From the NCBI RefSeq assembly GCF_902459465.1, contig NC_047076.1:248001-312000 (forward strand): DNA of 64,000 nucleotides, in the 5' to 3' direction. Positions 28,501 through 37,500 of the stretch are shown here, piece by piece (positions within the stretch are counted from its first letter, which is position 1; each line of letters begins with the position of its first letter). The stretch is from Asterias rubens (taxonomy: Eukaryota). The position numbers and the translations under genes are program-made. The notes beneath the pieces are model-generated. The model was given only the letters and a program-made list of their open reading frames with translations. It had not been told where the DNA came from and ran no database searches.

Positions 28501-31500
28501 CCATAGGTCCTATGTGTTGTGTACCTTTGGATGGGACATGAAGCCATAGGTCCTATGTGTTGTGTACCTTTGGATGGGACATGAAGCCATAGGTCCTATG
28601 TGTTGTGTACCTTTGGATGGGACATGAAGCCATAGGTCCTATCCCAGGTCGAAATTCCAGTTGAACCTAGTTAAACTGGGTTTAACTGGAACTAGTTGAA
28701 ACCAGTTGATAAACTAGTTAAACACAGTTAAAACCAGTTGCTTTAATATGGAAAATGGACAGAGACCAACTGGTTTATAATTTCAACCTAGTTGAACACA
28801 GTTAAACCTAGTCCAAACCAGTTGGTTAATATGGCTAATGGACGAGGTTGATCACTATCCAGTTGAACCAGTTGACCCCAGTTAACTAGGTACAACTGGA
28901 ATTTTGACCTGGGATGTGTTGTGTACCTTTGGATGGGACATGAAGCCATAGGTCCTATGTGTTGTGTACCTTTAAATGGGACATGAAGCCATAGGTCCTA
29001 TGTGTTGTGTACCTTTGGATGGGACATGAAGCCATAGGTCCTATGTGTTGTGTACCTTTGGATGGGACATGAAGCCATAGGTCCTATGTGTTGTGTACCT
29101 TTGGATGGGACATGAAGCCATAGGTCCTATGTGTTGTGTACCTTTAAATGGGACATGAAGCCATAGGTCCTATGTGTTGTGTACCTTTGGATGGGACATG
29201 AAGCCATAGGTCCTATGTGTTGTGTACCTTTGGATGGGACATGAAGCCATAGGTCCTATGTGTTGTGTACCTTTAAATGGGATATGAAGCCATAGGTCCT
29301 ATGTGTTGTGTACCTTTGGATGGGACATGAAGCCATAGGTCCTATGTGTTGTGTACCTTTGGATGGGACATGAAGCCATAGGTCCTATGTGTTGTGTACC
29401 TTAAAATGGGACATGAAGCCATAGGTCCTATGTGTTGTGTACCTTTGGATGGGACATGAAGCTATAGGTCCTATGTGTTGTGTAATGCACGTAAAAATAC
29501 ACTTATCGCTATAAGTAAAGGGGTTTGCTCCAGTGTTCCTGGCAGTGGCTGCTGAATGCACCATGACCTTGTAAACACAAAGTGTTACATAAATGGGTCT
29601 CGCTATTCAAAAACCTCAAACTAATGCTAAGCACTGTGATAATTAATAAAGTGCTAAACAAAAATGAGTTATTGTTGTTATTATTATTGTTTTTATATTA
29701 TTATTATTTTCTTGATTTACTTAGGTCTTTTCTTTGGATGATGACACAATACGTTCTCAGGTTGTCATATACTGCTTACTTCTCTTTGCACTTGGTGTTA
29801 TTGCATTCATTACCAATGGTTTAGGGGTAAGTACATCAACTTATTGGCCTAGCTTTTATTTCTTGTCCAGAACTGTTGATAAGAGGCAATCAGTATTTCC
29901 AAACATTTATTTGAAATTGCCCCGTACTTTGGTAACAAAACAATTGAAAGCACTTATATTTCAGCAATATCCTGTATTCATTAAGTTCAAACTACTGCTA
30001 AGTGTCTTGTCTCTTGGACCTAATTTCATGGCTCTGCTTACTGCAGAATTCAATGCTTACGTTCCTCATTCTCCGCTTACAGTAAGCGCTGAATTTCTAA
30101 ATATGCTGTCTTAACAAAGAAAATAAATTGTTTGTGATGCATTTGCTCAAGCAAAAAAATATTTGCTAAGCTGTGAAAAATATTCTTACATTAAGTGCAG
30201 ATTGTCATGCTTCTGTAAGTGTATAGATGTTTGACTGCGGTAAGCAGATTATAACCTTCAGGTGAGGTTTGCTGTAGCACCATGTTTAAATCGCTTTTGA
30301 GTTGGGATGGTTCCGAGAACAGTTCTGTCAGTTCTCAACAGAGATTTCCAAATGGTGCTAACGCAAAACCTCACCTGTTTGTATATCCCACCGGGCAAAG
30401 TTTGAAATCTTACTGAAGTTCCTCCCTCCATCTCTGTATGAATGATTGCCTTTAGAAAAAACTTTCAGAGAAGTGGGAGTGGGGTTAGAGTTAAGAATGT
30501 TTTAAAGGCAGTGGACACTATTGGTAAATACTCAAAATAGTTATCGGCATAAAACCTCACTTGGTAACGAGTAATAGGGAGAGGTTGATAGTATAAAACA
30601 TTGTGAGAAACGGCTCCCTCAGAAGTGACTTAGTTTTCGAGATAGAAGTAATTTTCCACGAATTTGATTTCGAGACCTCAAGTTTAGAATTTGAGGTCTC
30701 GAAATCAAGCATCTGAAAGCACACAACTTTGTGTGACTAGGGTGTCTTATATTTCATTCATATCTCGCAACTTCGACGACCAATTGAGCTCAAATTTTCA
30801 CAGGTTTGTTATTTTATGCATATGTTGAGATACACCAAGTGAGAAGACTGGTCTTTGACAATTACCAATAGTGTCCACTGTCTTAAAACAATGTAAGTGA
30901 AGCAAAACAAGTTTTAATATGTCATTAATATTTGCAAATTGTTGTTACCTGTAGGGTATGATGCTAGGCAAGTCAGGTGGGGAGCTTACAATGCGGCTAA
31001 GAAGATTAGCATTCAAGGCTATGTTAAGACAGGTAAGTCAAATAAATCATTATTCTGTAACAGGTCTCCTCTATAGATAAACTGCGCCAATAAAGTATCT
31101 AAACACTTACAAATGGTCAGATTTATCGGAACCTGAATTAGTGTGCAACAAAACCTTATTGGCGCAGTTTAGTTCCCGAAAGACGCCATTTAAAGCAAAT
31201 TGCATTTTGGCTTGCAGGTGCGTCAAGCGCTCAAATTACTAATGCAGTCACATCATTCACTAACCAATCATGCATTGAGTTTTATGAAATGTTTGCGTGT
31301 TGCTGTTCTCACGAGTAATGCATGATTGTGTGTTCTAAATTGCCTGTAAAGATGGCCGATTTACGTCATATTGCAACCTATCTATCTGTTTGGTAATCAC
31401 TCTTAAAATGAATGGCAAGGACAACTTTTGGCAATAGCAGACTACAACAGCTTTCAATAAAGCATTTTTAGAAATATTTTACTTCAAAGTAGTGTGGTTA

Positions 31501-34500
31501 TGTAGAAAGATATCAATTTTATTCCCCAAATTTTGAATCTCAGATTCAGATTGTGTAGCATTATTATTATTATTATTATTTATTCGGCCAAGATTTCAAC
31601 AAACAGTACAAGATACAATATTACTGTACTAAAGAAATATAACAGTATAAGAAACAACGAATGTAAACTTAAGACACCTAGAACAATTGTAAACCAATGA
31701 TTGAATGAGACAGAGCACTGGCAATCAAGCAAGACAATTATAAAAACAGACAGGACAAGCCCATTCTAAGATGGCCAGGATTAATAAAAGTGAACCTAAC
31801 CACTGTGTATTCCTATTGGGGATTAGTCTTCCCGCACGCGGACATATTCAACGATATCTTAAAAACGCAACCATCTTTTGAAATAAAATGTTCACATGTG
31901 CGTTATTGTGTACATCTACATTTCTATAGGATAAAAACAATCAAAACAGTTCCGAAAACAGAGGTTTACTTTGCCTTTAATTTCTTTAAGAAAAGTTGTT
32001 CTTGAGCACCATGGACAAAATGACTCTTGAGAGTTAAATCATTGGTAATAAGAGACGCAACTATGTACAATGACTCTTGAGAGTTAAATCATAGGTAATA
32101 AGAGACACAACTATGTACAATGACTCTTGAGAGTTAAATCATTGGTAAACCCAGGTCAAAATTCCAGTTGAACTTAGTTAACTGGGGTCAACTGGTTCAA
32201 CTGGATAGTGATCAACCTCGTCCATTTTCCATATTAACCAACTGGTTTGGACTAGGTTTAACTTTGTTCAACTAGGTTGAAATTATAAACCAGTTGGTCT
32301 CTGTCCATTTTCCATATTAAACCAACTGGTTTTAACTGTGTTTAACTAGTTTATCAACTGGTTTCAACTAGTTCCAGTTAAACCCAGTTTAACTAGGCAC
32401 CTAGAATTTTGACCTACATGTAGAAATAATAAGAGACACAACTATGTACAATGAGGAGAGCGAAGTCAAATGGAGCTGAAGCTTGACTAAGGTTGATGAA
32501 CATTGCTTTGACCAATCGTTGAGCAATACAGCAGACTTGATCGCTTGGAGGTGTTTGATTGGTCAGGCATTCCTCATCAAGTACCCACTGGTATTGATTC
32601 TGGTTGGAAATCTACATTTTAAAAACGAGAAATGAACAAACAAAGAAAAGACAATAAATCTGAGGTCAGTATAGAGATCTTTTTTACTCCGGGCTCGAAG
32701 TTGACACTGGACCCCGGCCCAGGCCTGAGGTCAGTGATTTGAGTGTCGGGCCAGTAAACTTACGACTATACAAGTTCGGCCGTCTTGTGTTTTCAATATT
32801 GACAGTTCACTGCATTTTTAAATTTTTTACTTTTGTTGAGTATTGAAGTTTTACAATGTACCCATAGAAAAAATGAGATAAAGTTTCTTTTAGTGATTGT
32901 TCCAGAAATTTTGTGGTCCTGTAAAAGTTTTGAGCTACCATATTGAGTTTATTGTCTCATTCCTTAACGTGACTGGGCAACAGAGGGCAGTGTGTGATCT
33001 GATGACAAACTTCAGAGGTAGGGTGTACCTGCACAAAATTTTAATAATTATTGAAACTGATCAAGGAACTAGAGTTAGTAATGCCTTAATATTTATAAAC
33101 AAAGTGAACAAGTTCCAAACAAGCAATCATTTGGTCACAAACGGCGATTCAAAAACGAGTTGTTTACGGGCTCTTTCAAGGCCATTGGTAAAGCAAGGGG
33201 ATCGCAAAAAACGTGTATCATGAACTTCATCGATATATGTACCTGTATGGAATTGTCGTCAAATTGTGCAATTTTTGGAAGGGGGGACAATCTTAGATAT
33301 ATGTAGAATCCTATACCAAGTGAACAAGTTGTGCAGACTATTCCCCCTTGTCACAATTTAACTAACAATGCTGTGATGGTGATTGCGCCCATGTAACCCT
33401 AACCCTAACCCTAACCCTAACCCTGGAGTGTTGTGGATTTTTTCCCCAAATCTGAGCCCTGTGATTGAAAACAACTCAAAAATTGTTTTTATGGAAACAA
33501 TTGGAATTTTGTTTGAATAAAATGAAGAATGTGATTTTACCTGTACTATTTGAACTACATCCCCATCTTCTTGTAGTGCAAGAACAAGCGGCTCATAGAT
33601 TGGGTTTGGCTGACAAACTCTTTCCAATAACTCGCACTGTCCTGCTACATTCCTTCGTGCGGGTCCGTCTTCGCTTCGTCCAGAAATGTTTCGCTCACCT
33701 TGTGGGAGTCCCAAATTAAATATCCATGGGAAGTTACGAATGATTTGATTTTCTTGGTTGCGAGTGAGCTGAACTATTGGGATCTGATGAACTCTGTCAT
33801 ACACCAACTGTGGATTTCCTTCCATGGCTTTAATGATATCTCGTTGGTTCTCTATTTGCTGTAATTGGTTGGTATTTAGAGGACTGATTGACTGTGCGGA
33901 GCATGTTGGGCAGCACTGCAATGATGAAACCTCGTTTGGTAGCGTCAATAAGAGAATGAAAACTGGTAGATACCAACTCAGCATCGTTGTAGCTTGTCAG
34001 AGATTTCAAGCAGGAGACTTTAATTCACAACTCTCAGTCGAACAATGTTAGACTAGAAATGGATTGCTCAGTAGATATGGTAAACAATGTCTGAACTGTT
34101 GGGAAATTCTCATTTACAACATGTGACCAGAAGGAAATAGTGACACTCAGTGTTAAAAATGTGCAGAGTAATAGTGATGTCATGTCATGCACTGTTTATT
34201 GTTAAAATGTTCATTCCTGTTTTCAATGAAATAAAGAATTTGCGTGTGACTGTATGCTTACTGGAGATCTGTAGGCGTATGTGTGACTGCACAAACAGAT
34301 ACGAACCATAACCACAAAGGTCCTTTGTCATTTAAATAAGCTTAGTCTGGGGAAACCAACCTTCAATAATTCAAGTATACATCAAGTGTTTTTTTAATGA
34401 CTCAAACCGTATGGTAAATTCTATGCTAAGAGTGCTTAAAGGAAATTATTTACAATGGAAATGATTCAGCATTTTGAAAAAGAATAAAACATTCTCAGAC

Positions 34501-37500
34501 TAAATTGTCTGCATTATTGTTGACTGGAACCCTTTACTAAAAATGCATCCTTGACCACAAGAATTAAGATACACAACTTTGCACAGGAACATGACTAAAA
34601 CCATTCATGAAGGTGTTGATATTGATAAACAGTGATGTAAAGCGCTCAGCGACGCAGCAAATCTGATCATCTTGAAGAGACGGCTGAAGAGTGTTATGTA
34701 CAGTACCTCAGCAAGTAGTATTTTAAGAGAAGCTTTTTACCATCGTTATCTTTAAACTGTGTCAACTTGATGTAAATCTGTGGACATGGTGTTTTGTGTC
34801 TTACAAAAAGGACCCAATCGTTTTAAACATGCTCTTCCTGTGTCAGTAAAGTAATATCCCAGTCTCGTTCCTTGTATTTCTAGGATGTTGCTTTCTTCGA
34901 TGATCACAAAAACAGCAGCGGAATTCTAACAACTAGGCTCTCGACAGAAGCTTCACAGATTCAGGGGGTGAGGGAAACTGAATGTGATAATTGCAATGTT
35001 TTTTATACTATTTTTCCTTTGGCACACAGAGAATGTATTTGTTTTGATACTAGCGTCAGACTTTCTTGTAAAAAAATAGTAAATTACAAAGAAGAAAAAA
35101 AAGGCATAGATTTTTGGTTTTTAAGAAAATGGCAAATGGAAAAATTGTGTGCCTCCTTATGCACCTCCACGAGTCCCCTATTGAACCCTAGTTCAGGAAG
35201 AAGATTGAAAGAAATGAAACACTGAGCTATCATTTATCCTTCCCTTTGCTCATCTTATCTTGATAGGTGACTGGTGATCGATTTGGGTTTATATCTCAAG
35301 GATTCTTCAACATCGGTGTTGCTATCATCATTGCGTTTATCTTTGGTTGGCAGTTGACATTACTCGTCTTAACTTTTCTTCCATTCATTGCCTCTGCTAG
35401 TCTACTCCAACTTAAGTTCCAACAAGGCAACGTCAAATCTCAGAAATCTAGTCAGGAAAGCATTGGAAAGGTAGGACACAATTTGTTGGGAAATATCAAA
35501 AGTTTTTTTATAAATTGTTAGGCACCCAGGAGCTGCGGAGCATTATCCATGGATGGATGCTATATAAATTATCATTATTATTCGTTTATTTGTTTGTTTG
35601 AAGAACCATTGACTCTTTTTATGAAAGCAATTATCGCTTGGAGTGCTTTCTGGCTGCTGCCAATTATAGCGTTAAATGGTTTTCCAGCAAAGTACCCAAA
35701 CTGCTTGCCAATATATTTTATTCTTTCATTAGTCTGCGTTTCTTTTAATCCCCTATGTAGGGTTAAAGTTTTGCATAAATCTATGGAGGTGGAGAATCTC
35801 AAATATCTTTTTTGGAATAGATTGTTGATTTGAAAAAAACGTTGTTGCTTTAAGCCTGGTTCGTACTTCCTGTAGATGCGATGACAATTTTGATGTCACA
35901 AATTCGGATGAGTTGAAATGTGCTCATTTGCTGGGAAACATTTGCTGCGAAACAGCCCTGTGATGTAAAAACTTGTATCGCATTGCAGGGAGTCTGAAGC
36001 GAGCTTTATTGTCAATGATTTGACTTGTGTGGTCTAGACCTCATAATGAGATTGAATCCTGGCTGTAACCAATTATTATGTCATCTCTTTTAAACAGATC
36101 GTCACTGAAACCATTGAGAATATTCGGACTGTGGCTAGTTTGACACTGGAGCCAAAATTCAATGAGCAACATACAGAGTTTCTCGCCAAACCTCACAAGT
36201 AAATATTTCACTTTAGTTATTTTGTATTTAGAAATTTAATAAAATAAACAAATGTATTAAGAAGGATTAAGCTGTGTTTGACATATTTGAAAAGTTAACA
36301 GTTTCAAAGTCGTTGGTTCAAATCCCACCCAAGTAATATGCTCGGGAAAGTATGTAGTATTCAGCGCTTACACACATTGGTGTATGGCTAAAACCAAAAT
36401 GAGTATACAAGTCATAAAGTATGTAGTATACAGCGCTTACACACATTGGTGTTTGGCTAAAACCAAAATTAGTATACAAGTCATATACACGCATGATATT
36501 CTTCCTATATAAGTCTGATTTCTGATTTGTTTGTCCCTCAGAATAATCAGCCAAATTGTTATTAAATAGCCTGATAAGATCATACCATCATGTAGGTCCC
36601 AGCCGCTGTTTTCTCAGTCATATGTCATCCATTTTTCAAAGGGTCAAGTATCATGTTTCTTTGAAGATTGAAAGTTAGTTTGCATAGAGAGAGGTTCATT
36701 ATAAGTCATTAAATGAAAACAGTTCCATAATTTAGAGCGACGGCACATCATTCCGGAGGTTGTTGATTCAATCCCGCTCTAGAAAGTTTTTCTTTGTTCA
36801 ACCCCAAATACTTGAATTCTTGTACCGTTTGATGATTGATTAGGACGAGTTTGAGGGATGCTCATCTATCTGGAGTTGCTTACGGTGCGTCTCAGTGTGT
36901 CATCTTCTTTGCTTATGCAGCAGCATTTCGCTATGGTGGCTGGCTTGTTGAAAATGGACACATGCAATTTGAGAACATCTTCCTGTGAGTATAAAAACAG
37001 ATCCTTGGGTTTTATTGTAACCTCAATGAAAATCCAAGCTGTCTAGTTGACTCATTTAGCAATACCTTGTTTTTAATTTTGTTTAAAAGACATGTTTGGT
37101 ATTTACTAAAATATATATTAGCATAAAAACTTACTTGGTAACGAGCAATGGGGAGCTGTTGATAGTATAAAACATTGTGAACAAAGACTCCCTCTGAAGT
37201 AAAGTAGTTTTTGAGAAGTATTTCTTACTAAAATATTTGAATCTGAAAAAGACTTAAGGGAGTGAAGGGTATGTTTGTAGCTTCTAGAATGTGCAATTAT
37301 AGAACAGAGGAGTTTGCCCTAGTGTTCCTGGTTTGATTGGCACCATTAAGCAACTTGTAAACCATTACATGGTGCTATGTAAAAAGGAGTAGGTCTCATA
37401 ATTCAAATGTAGTCCCACATACCTTGCAGGAAAATACTGAATGTTGAAGTACCTTGAGCCCTTCCAGAGCGTCACGGATGTGAGCGCTATATAAGAAGCC

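Follow-up and report, generated by a model that had tools for sequence, protein, structure and literature searches.

A 64,000 nucleotide (nt) window of the genome of the sea star Asterias rubens (NCBI RefSeq assembly GCF_902459465.1, contig NC_047076.1, positions 248,001 to 312,000; coordinates below without a contig name are those of the window) contains a gene nested in an intron of an ABCB-type transporter gene and lying on the opposite strand. The nested antisense gene is real, spliced and expressed as a transcript. It is probably functional, and in the reading we favour its two coding exons would specify a secreted pro-protein that ends in a cystine-knot domain of the neurotrophin/Spaetzle/coagulogen type and acts as a dimeric extracellular ligand, with the nesting an accident of position. 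The host intron, 31033-34883, had been assigned to a plus-strand ABC transporter in an earlier account made from the DNA letters only (here, the sequence-only reading), and matches to the Pfam model ABC_membrane in the adjoining plus-strand exons agree with this.

The minus strand carries an open reading frame (ORF) that starts with ATG and spans 33984-33358 in the ORF list. Its first 148 codons, from the Met start (33984-33541), form coding exon 1, which encodes a leader (approximately residues 1-21), a pro-region with a CCPTC motif, the dibasic RR and the first half of the knot domain, including Cys I (C124). The exon ends at the donor CAG/GTAAAA, with the GT at 33540/39, and the acceptor AG, preceded by a pyrimidine-rich tract, is at 32613/32612. 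The GT..AG intron between them (32612-33540, minus strand) is in phase 0 and splits the knot domain. Coding exon 2 (32414-32611, minus strand) consists of 65 codons (32611-32417) and a stop codon (32416-32414), and includes the QW motif, Cys II (C163), a CC pair (C175 and C176) and Cys V (C206). The joined product is 213 amino acids (aa) long.

Contigs of four public runs were mapped on window positions 30800-35100. In three runs, from three independent studies, one contig each (940, 813 and 820 nt) joins 32611 to 33541 with no mismatches, and in the same runs depth is near zero over most of the nested-gene intron. This combination of an exact junction and a nearly empty intron indicates that the runs are RNA-derived and that the splice is real. 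The minus-strand gene with a second coding exon that the sequence-only reading had proposed is thereby confirmed, as is its 33541>32611 junction, though the contigs are unstranded and the minus-strand orientation is set by the GT..AG boundaries and the ORF. The metatranscriptome run X1 yielded a single 198 nt piece across the exon 2 acceptor boundary, which is uninformative on splicing.

A search with the exon 1 product retrieved an orthologue from Asterias amurensis (P0001), a 212 aa 'uncharacterized protein' with 86 % identity. The A. amurensis gene has the same two exons with the same donor and acceptor contexts, and lies antisense inside a gene of 1367 residues with two ABC_membrane + ABC_tran units. 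Two short ORF read-through fragments (97-98 % identity) were also found. These fragments, P0002 and P0003, are from ENA contigs, match window positions 33541-33825 and resemble haplotype versions of exon 1, with 2-4 residue differences in approximately 100. At some of these positions they agree with A. amurensis, a hint of amino-acid polymorphism in the nested gene. The spliced protein was absent among the catalogued A. rubens proteins found, two A. rubens paralogues were present, and the nested gene thus seems to lack an annotation in A. rubens.

The family yielded 34 cluster representatives in an exhaustive phmmer search. Every named representative bar one is an uncharacterised protein of echinoderms (all five classes) or hemichordates, and the match to P0024, a Staphylococcus repeat protein, was discarded as spurious. 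Members were found in sea stars (Asterias, Acanthaster, Patiria), brittle stars (Amphiura), crinoids (Anneissia, Antedon), sea cucumbers (Apostichopus), sea urchins (Lytechinus, Strongylocentrotus, Diadema) and hemichordates (Glandiceps, Ptychodera). On the sequences retrieved, this is a multigene family limited to echinoderms and hemichordates (acorn worms). No description of an ambulacrarian four-Cys family was found in the literature searched, the coverage of which was incomplete, making this weak evidence of novelty.

In an alignment of 22 family members (A1), every full-length relative has a hydrophobic N-terminus, followed by a conserved pro-region with the motifs CCPxC (in sea stars), Q..QI, NP.LL and PIV.LT..Q, and most members have a furin-type RxRR or RKKR site. 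The C-terminal domain contains exactly four invariant Cys, an equally invariant QW motif (Q-W-x3-E) and an E-x-C motif. The nested-gene product has this layout: its hydrophobic N-terminal leader is followed by a helical pro-region that is conserved, by RR at residues 110-111 (33657-33652) and by approximately 100 aa of C-terminal domain. The leader was judged by inspection and from its occurrence in every relative, so that of the signal peptide claimed in the sequence-only reading the hydrophobic leader stands and the signal peptide itself is unconfirmed. The CCPTC motif and the pro-region ending in RR are both present as it had described. So are the six Cys after the dibasic site (C117, C124, C163, C175, C176 and C206) and the lack of a terminal CxC. 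In the register of the family and profile alignments, one Cys of the CC pair aligns with Cys IV. C117 and C175 are two extra Cys in the mature part of the window copy, and A. amurensis has three extra.

At least five further family loci are present in the genome, at C16:2339193-2341349, C22:5264799-5265651, C22:5269187-5269462, C11:7589860-7592357 and C12:12729090-12731856. Where both halves of a paralogous locus were matched, the match breaks at the same profile position, approximately 153, which points to an intron common to the paralogues. Both C22 matches are interrupted by an in-frame TGA or TAG, and these copies may be broken. The C16 paralogue is the annotated A. rubens LOC117299802 (P0006; 99 % match). 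Tandem runs occur in Patiria miniata (L018, 6424-19414), with four genes of which at least three are family members, and in Acanthaster planci (L019, 6791-12467), with two genes that are both family members. The genes in these runs encode 205-254 aa and are without Pfam matches.

Fold and profile searches used P0001 as the reference for the 213 aa window protein. Neither the exon products nor P0001 matched any Pfam model, even with a cut-off of E<=10. Of the 22 relatives, three matched NGF (PF00243; best E 9.8e-4), two matched Coagulin (PF02035; best E 6.5e-5), and none matched Spaetzle (PF16077) or IL17 (PF06083). When the family profile was compared with 177,635 PDB sequences, cobra NGF was first (E 0.46) and coagulogen second (E 0.53), with the Cys in register. 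An hhalign comparison of the family profile with the neurotrophin of the same genome gave E 1.1e-4, with Cys I, II, IV and V opposite the four invariant Cys. The AlphaFold2 model, for which A1 was the input alignment, had a predicted local distance difference test score (pLDDT) of 78 and a predicted template modelling score (pTM) of 0.71. The top 28 Foldseek matches of this orthologue- and family-based model in the PDB were all neurotrophins or coagulogen (probability up to 0.97; best E 6.6e-3). Of 48,161 representative chains compared by VIA-align, 13 had a Z of at least 2, and all 13 are cystine-knot growth factors, with Z values of 5.9 for coagulogen (132 residues aligned, including part of the pro-region), 5.2 for NGF, 5.2 for proNGF, 3.4 for noggin and 2.8 for IL-17A. 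In the AlphaFold DB, Swiss-Prot matches were NGF, NT-4, BDNF, Spaetzle 4, Spaetzle 5 and coagulogen, and the matching clusters were mostly Spaetzle-domain and NGF-domain proteins (best E 1.6e-4). Each of these scores is modest, and it is the agreement between the searches that carries the assignment, by which the family, as modelled, belongs to the neurotrophin/Spaetzle/coagulogen cystine-knot superfamily.

The sequence-only reading had named a Spaetzle/neurotrophin-like cystine-knot candidate. The superfamily is supported by Foldseek, VIA-align and the profile comparisons, but membership of the Spaetzle family proper is not, as PF16077 was silent for the protein, its 22 relatives and the whole genome; the controls for the genome search were equally silent, so absence from the genome is unproven. 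The NGF profile matched the three relatives but neither the protein nor its orthologue, and the IL-17 profile matched no member. A six-frame search of the genome with PF00243 found only four loci, all on contig C6 and none in the nested-gene family. One of them is the canonical six-Cys neurotrophin gene (C6:10185959-10186285; 86 bits), and its position on another chromosome rules out the nested gene as the canonical neurotrophin. Two NT2-type genes ending in CCSC, at C6:19440416-19440682 and C6:19428151-19428357, are also distinct from the family.

The cystine knot of NGF is made by six cysteines paired I-IV, II-V and III-VI. In the 22 relatives only four Cys are invariant, corresponding to I, II, IV and V, with no counterpart of III or VI, from which a knot reduced to two disulfides follows. 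By analogy with NGF, the family would keep disulfides I-IV and II-V and lack III-VI, forming an open two-disulfide knot. The suspicion in the sequence-only reading that the knot might be reduced or atypical was thus well founded.

Compared with the neurotrophins (NGF, BDNF, NT-3 and NT-4, PF00243, and the echinoderm NT and NT2), the predicted protein has the same order of leader, pro-region, basic site and C-terminal, beta-rich knot domain of approximately 100 aa. The Q-W...E-x-C motif is in register, as are Cys I, II, IV and V, the best Foldseek matches are to neurotrophins, and the model of the mature domain predicts a parallel homodimer. However, the family lacks Cys III and VI and therefore a threaded knot, the protein has no Pfam match, and an intron splits its knot domain, whereas the NGF-domain match of the genome's own neurotrophin is in a single open frame. 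With Spaetzle, the arthropod Toll ligand, the family shares the superfamily fold and the existence of multiple copies, which fits an immune role, and Spaetzle is likewise a pro-protein that is activated by cleavage. The best AlphaFold DB matches include Spaetzle 4, Spaetzle 5 and numerous Spaetzle-domain clusters, in alignments that often take in the pro-region, but PF16077 matches nothing here and the C-terminal CxC is missing. On its sequence, then, the protein resembles a neurotrophin/Spaetzle pro-ligand but matches none of PF16077, PF00243 and PF06083 and is missing two of the six defining Cys.

Rates of change were estimated from one orthologue pair, the A. rubens window and A. amurensis. 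Over the whole coding sequence the synonymous divergence (dS) is 0.059 and the nonsynonymous divergence (dN) 0.086. In the mature domain dN is 0.14, which is 2.8 times the intron rate (Fisher p 8e-5), while in the pro-region it is 0.041 and indistinguishable from the intron rate. Divergence in the nested-gene intron is 0.050, with seven indel events, none of which is a multiple of three. The coding sequence has two indels, both of 3 nt; at the intron rate 4.9 indel events would be expected, and the probability of no frameshift is approximately 0.007. An excess over the neutral rate in the mature domain, together with preservation of the frame, argues for positive selection and not decay, and the sequence comparison points to a mature domain under positive selection. 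The terminal branches of the tree (0.15 vs 0.01) suggested a separate acceleration in the window lineage, but parsimony polarisation against other sea-star paralogues assigned 11 changes to one side and 12 to the other, and the claim was dropped.

Maximum-likelihood analysis grouped the window protein with P0001 (support 100/100) at the end of a long stem (0.96). The pair falls within a sea-star clade supported at 97/96 and has no Patiria or Acanthaster orthologue in this tree. The nearest Patiria and Acanthaster genes are beside a NOX5-like gene or in tandem clusters of 2-4, and not in an ABCB gene. Among the family members checked, nesting in an ABCB gene is documented only in the two Asterias species. 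Synteny of the nesting thus holds for A. amurensis, where the gene is antisense in an ABCB-type gene, and was not seen for the nearest Patiria and Acanthaster genes. With nesting seen only in these two species, the suggestion in the sequence-only reading that it couples a ligand to the ABCB pump finds no support, and cross-talk between the nested gene and a drug pump is pure speculation.

If the favoured reading is correct, the 213 aa pro-protein would be secreted via its leader peptide, as the architecture of the family suggests, and, if it behaves as neurotrophins and Spaetzle do, would most likely undergo cleavage at its basic site. By the same analogy, the mature domain would act extracellularly as a parallel homodimeric ligand, with Toll-like receptors, p75NTR and Trk as candidate receptors. 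Positive selection on the mature domain would be of the kind that is common for immune or reproductive ligands, and the position of this Asterias-lineage duplicate inside the host intron would be an accident and not a regulatory device. A homodimer model of the mature domain scored 0.35 for the interaction prediction score from aligned errors (ipSAE), against 0.01 for the best control, with runs agreeing in at least 78 % of contacts and a pLDDT of at least 62. Among solved structures, 21 of 30 homodimers and 0 of 23 monomers reached the mark used to call a dimer; for animal proteins, only 7 of 16 homodimers did so.

Several findings weigh against this reading. Overall dN/dS is approximately 1.5 (1.46) and the pro-region evolves at the neutral rate, indicating a partial relaxation of constraint on this copy. 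Where most relatives have RxRR or RKKR, the window copy has only PARR, it lacks one Cys that is present in A. amurensis, and its last residues derive from a transposon insertion. No Pfam model is significant on the protein, and the sequence-level links to NGF and coagulogen are all weak, resting on consistency and not on any single E-value. The dimer score may reflect the model's memory of solved neurotrophin dimers, with only 7/16 animal homodimers reaching the mark, and the receptors named are candidates only. The contigs, being unstranded, give no tissue, expression level or transcript start.

Many of the same features would be expected of a decaying duplicate, that is, a recent paralogue in the ABCB intron that is still transcribed and spliced but is unconstrained and drifting towards a pseudogene. 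Besides the dN/dS ratio and the neutral pro-region, this would account for the degenerate cleavage site, the Cys that differs between the two species, the rewriting of the stop region by a miniature inverted-repeat transposable element (MITE) and the absence of the protein from a catalogued set that contains two of its paralogues. However, relaxed constraint cannot raise the nonsynonymous rate of the mature domain 2.8-fold above that of the intron, and neither a frameshift nor a stop codon has arisen although 4.9 indel events were expected. All family-invariant residues were retained over the long stem branch, and the splice sites and promoter block are conserved in both Asterias species. We consider decay unlikely on this evidence.

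The structural searches raise the question of whether the protein is instead a coagulogen-like structural or clotting protein, in which proteolysis would free the helical pro-region, after which the knot domain would polymerise during coelomic clotting or the plugging of wounds. Horseshoe-crab coagulogen/coagulin (PF02035) gave the highest structural Z and the second-best PDB profile match, it too has a helical segment before its NGF-like domain, and the weak matches of two relatives to Coagulin include the best E-value for any single family among the relatives. But the Z gap to NGF is <1, which VIA-align treats as a tie, and coagulogen is a single-chain clottable protein that is far richer in Cys; neither its 16 Cys nor its two defined clotting-enzyme sites were seen in the nested-gene protein. 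Coagulogen is known from chelicerates only. The predicted symmetric parallel dimer resembles those of neurotrophins, and contig depth is modest, unlike that of an abundant clot protein, though contig depth is a poor measure of expression. A clotting role is accordingly a distinctly improbable alternative to a ligand. Another possibility is a cytokine of the IL-17 type (PF06083), the other cystine-knot family with only two disulfides. IL-17 also has the fold without one of the three knot disulfides and with four conserved Cys, language-model neighbours include clusters that bear PF06083, and IL-17A was matched by VIA-align. The missing pair is different, however: IL-17 structures keep Cys II, III, V and VI, whereas I, II, IV and V are retained here. 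The C-x4-C...C-x-C spacing also differs, PF06083 matched 0/22 members, and NGF and coagulogen score much higher than IL-17A, leaving this explanation with very little probability.

The favoured ligand reading is of interest in echinoderms, which carry very large Toll-like receptor families; 222 Toll-like receptor genes are cited for a sea urchin in a review (PMC6043800). A multigene family with a protease site and a predicted Spaetzle/neurotrophin fold, present in all five echinoderm classes and in hemichordates, supplies specific candidates for endogenous Toll, p75 or Trk ligands. One could go further and see the ambulacrarian four-Cys family as the deuterostome counterpart of Spaetzle, a set of fast-evolving, protease-activated cytokines feeding the expanded echinoderm Toll-like receptors or p75NTR, with the ABCB-nested copy as a positively selected member, but this we regard as doubtful. 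If the predicted disulfides are correct, the family would join IL-17 as the second natural case in which a cystine-knot fold works with two disulfides, with a different pair dropped. The locus also illustrates that a nested antisense gene can be missed by a public gene set, even when paralogues from the same species are catalogued.

The 5' untranslated region extends over at least 33985-34236 (minus strand) and is continuous with the coding exon, with no intron. The contigs reach 34236 in run X3, 34192 in X4 and 34116 in X7, and contig record 14 of run X3 is unbroken from 33541 to 34236, past the sole plausible acceptor. A separate non-coding first exon, as proposed in the sequence-only reading, is therefore unsupported, and it was rejected also on the lack of read depth at 34256-34399 and because the candidate donor, CCAGTAAG, reads CCATTGAG in A. 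amurensis. The TATA-like box noted there is present: TATTTAAAT (34338-34330, minus strand) is invariant between the window and A. amurensis, and the longest transcript contig ends approximately 95 nt downstream of it. An AP-1-like heptamer, TGAGTCA (34398-34404, minus strand), also identical in A. amurensis, is a putative promoter element. Both lie in a block of approximately 95 nt in which the two Asterias species hardly differ, while the 5' untranslated region downstream has several indels, and a conserved core promoter upstream of the nested gene is plausible. A scan for bacterial promoters and terminators was disregarded as irrelevant to a eukaryotic gene.

At the other end, the contigs define a 3' untranslated region of at least 32368-32413 (minus strand), which enters a high-copy MITE-like insertion. 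Further contig pieces at 31778-32087 have a depth similar to that of the nested-gene contigs, and bins in 32096-32383 are at repeat-level depth; the 3' untranslated region probably continues to at least 31778. Between 32021 and 32452 the stop region is rearranged relative to A. amurensis, with three copies of a unit of approximately 46 nt in which the last codons lie. The first copy contains a high-copy element whose ends are inverted (ggtcaaaattc...gaattttgacc); the transcript contigs enter this element, and it changes the C-terminus from YYK-stop to YYFYM-stop. The nested-gene intron includes a short telomere-like (TTAGGG)n run at 33387-33430, and ORF read-through across this run accounts for the GLGLGLGL tail of P0002 and of the listed ORF. 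In the host intron and its flank, the segments 30800-30943 and 34688-34831 have extremely high contig depth and many joints in the RNA-derived runs, and belong to very abundant repeats or transcribed elements.

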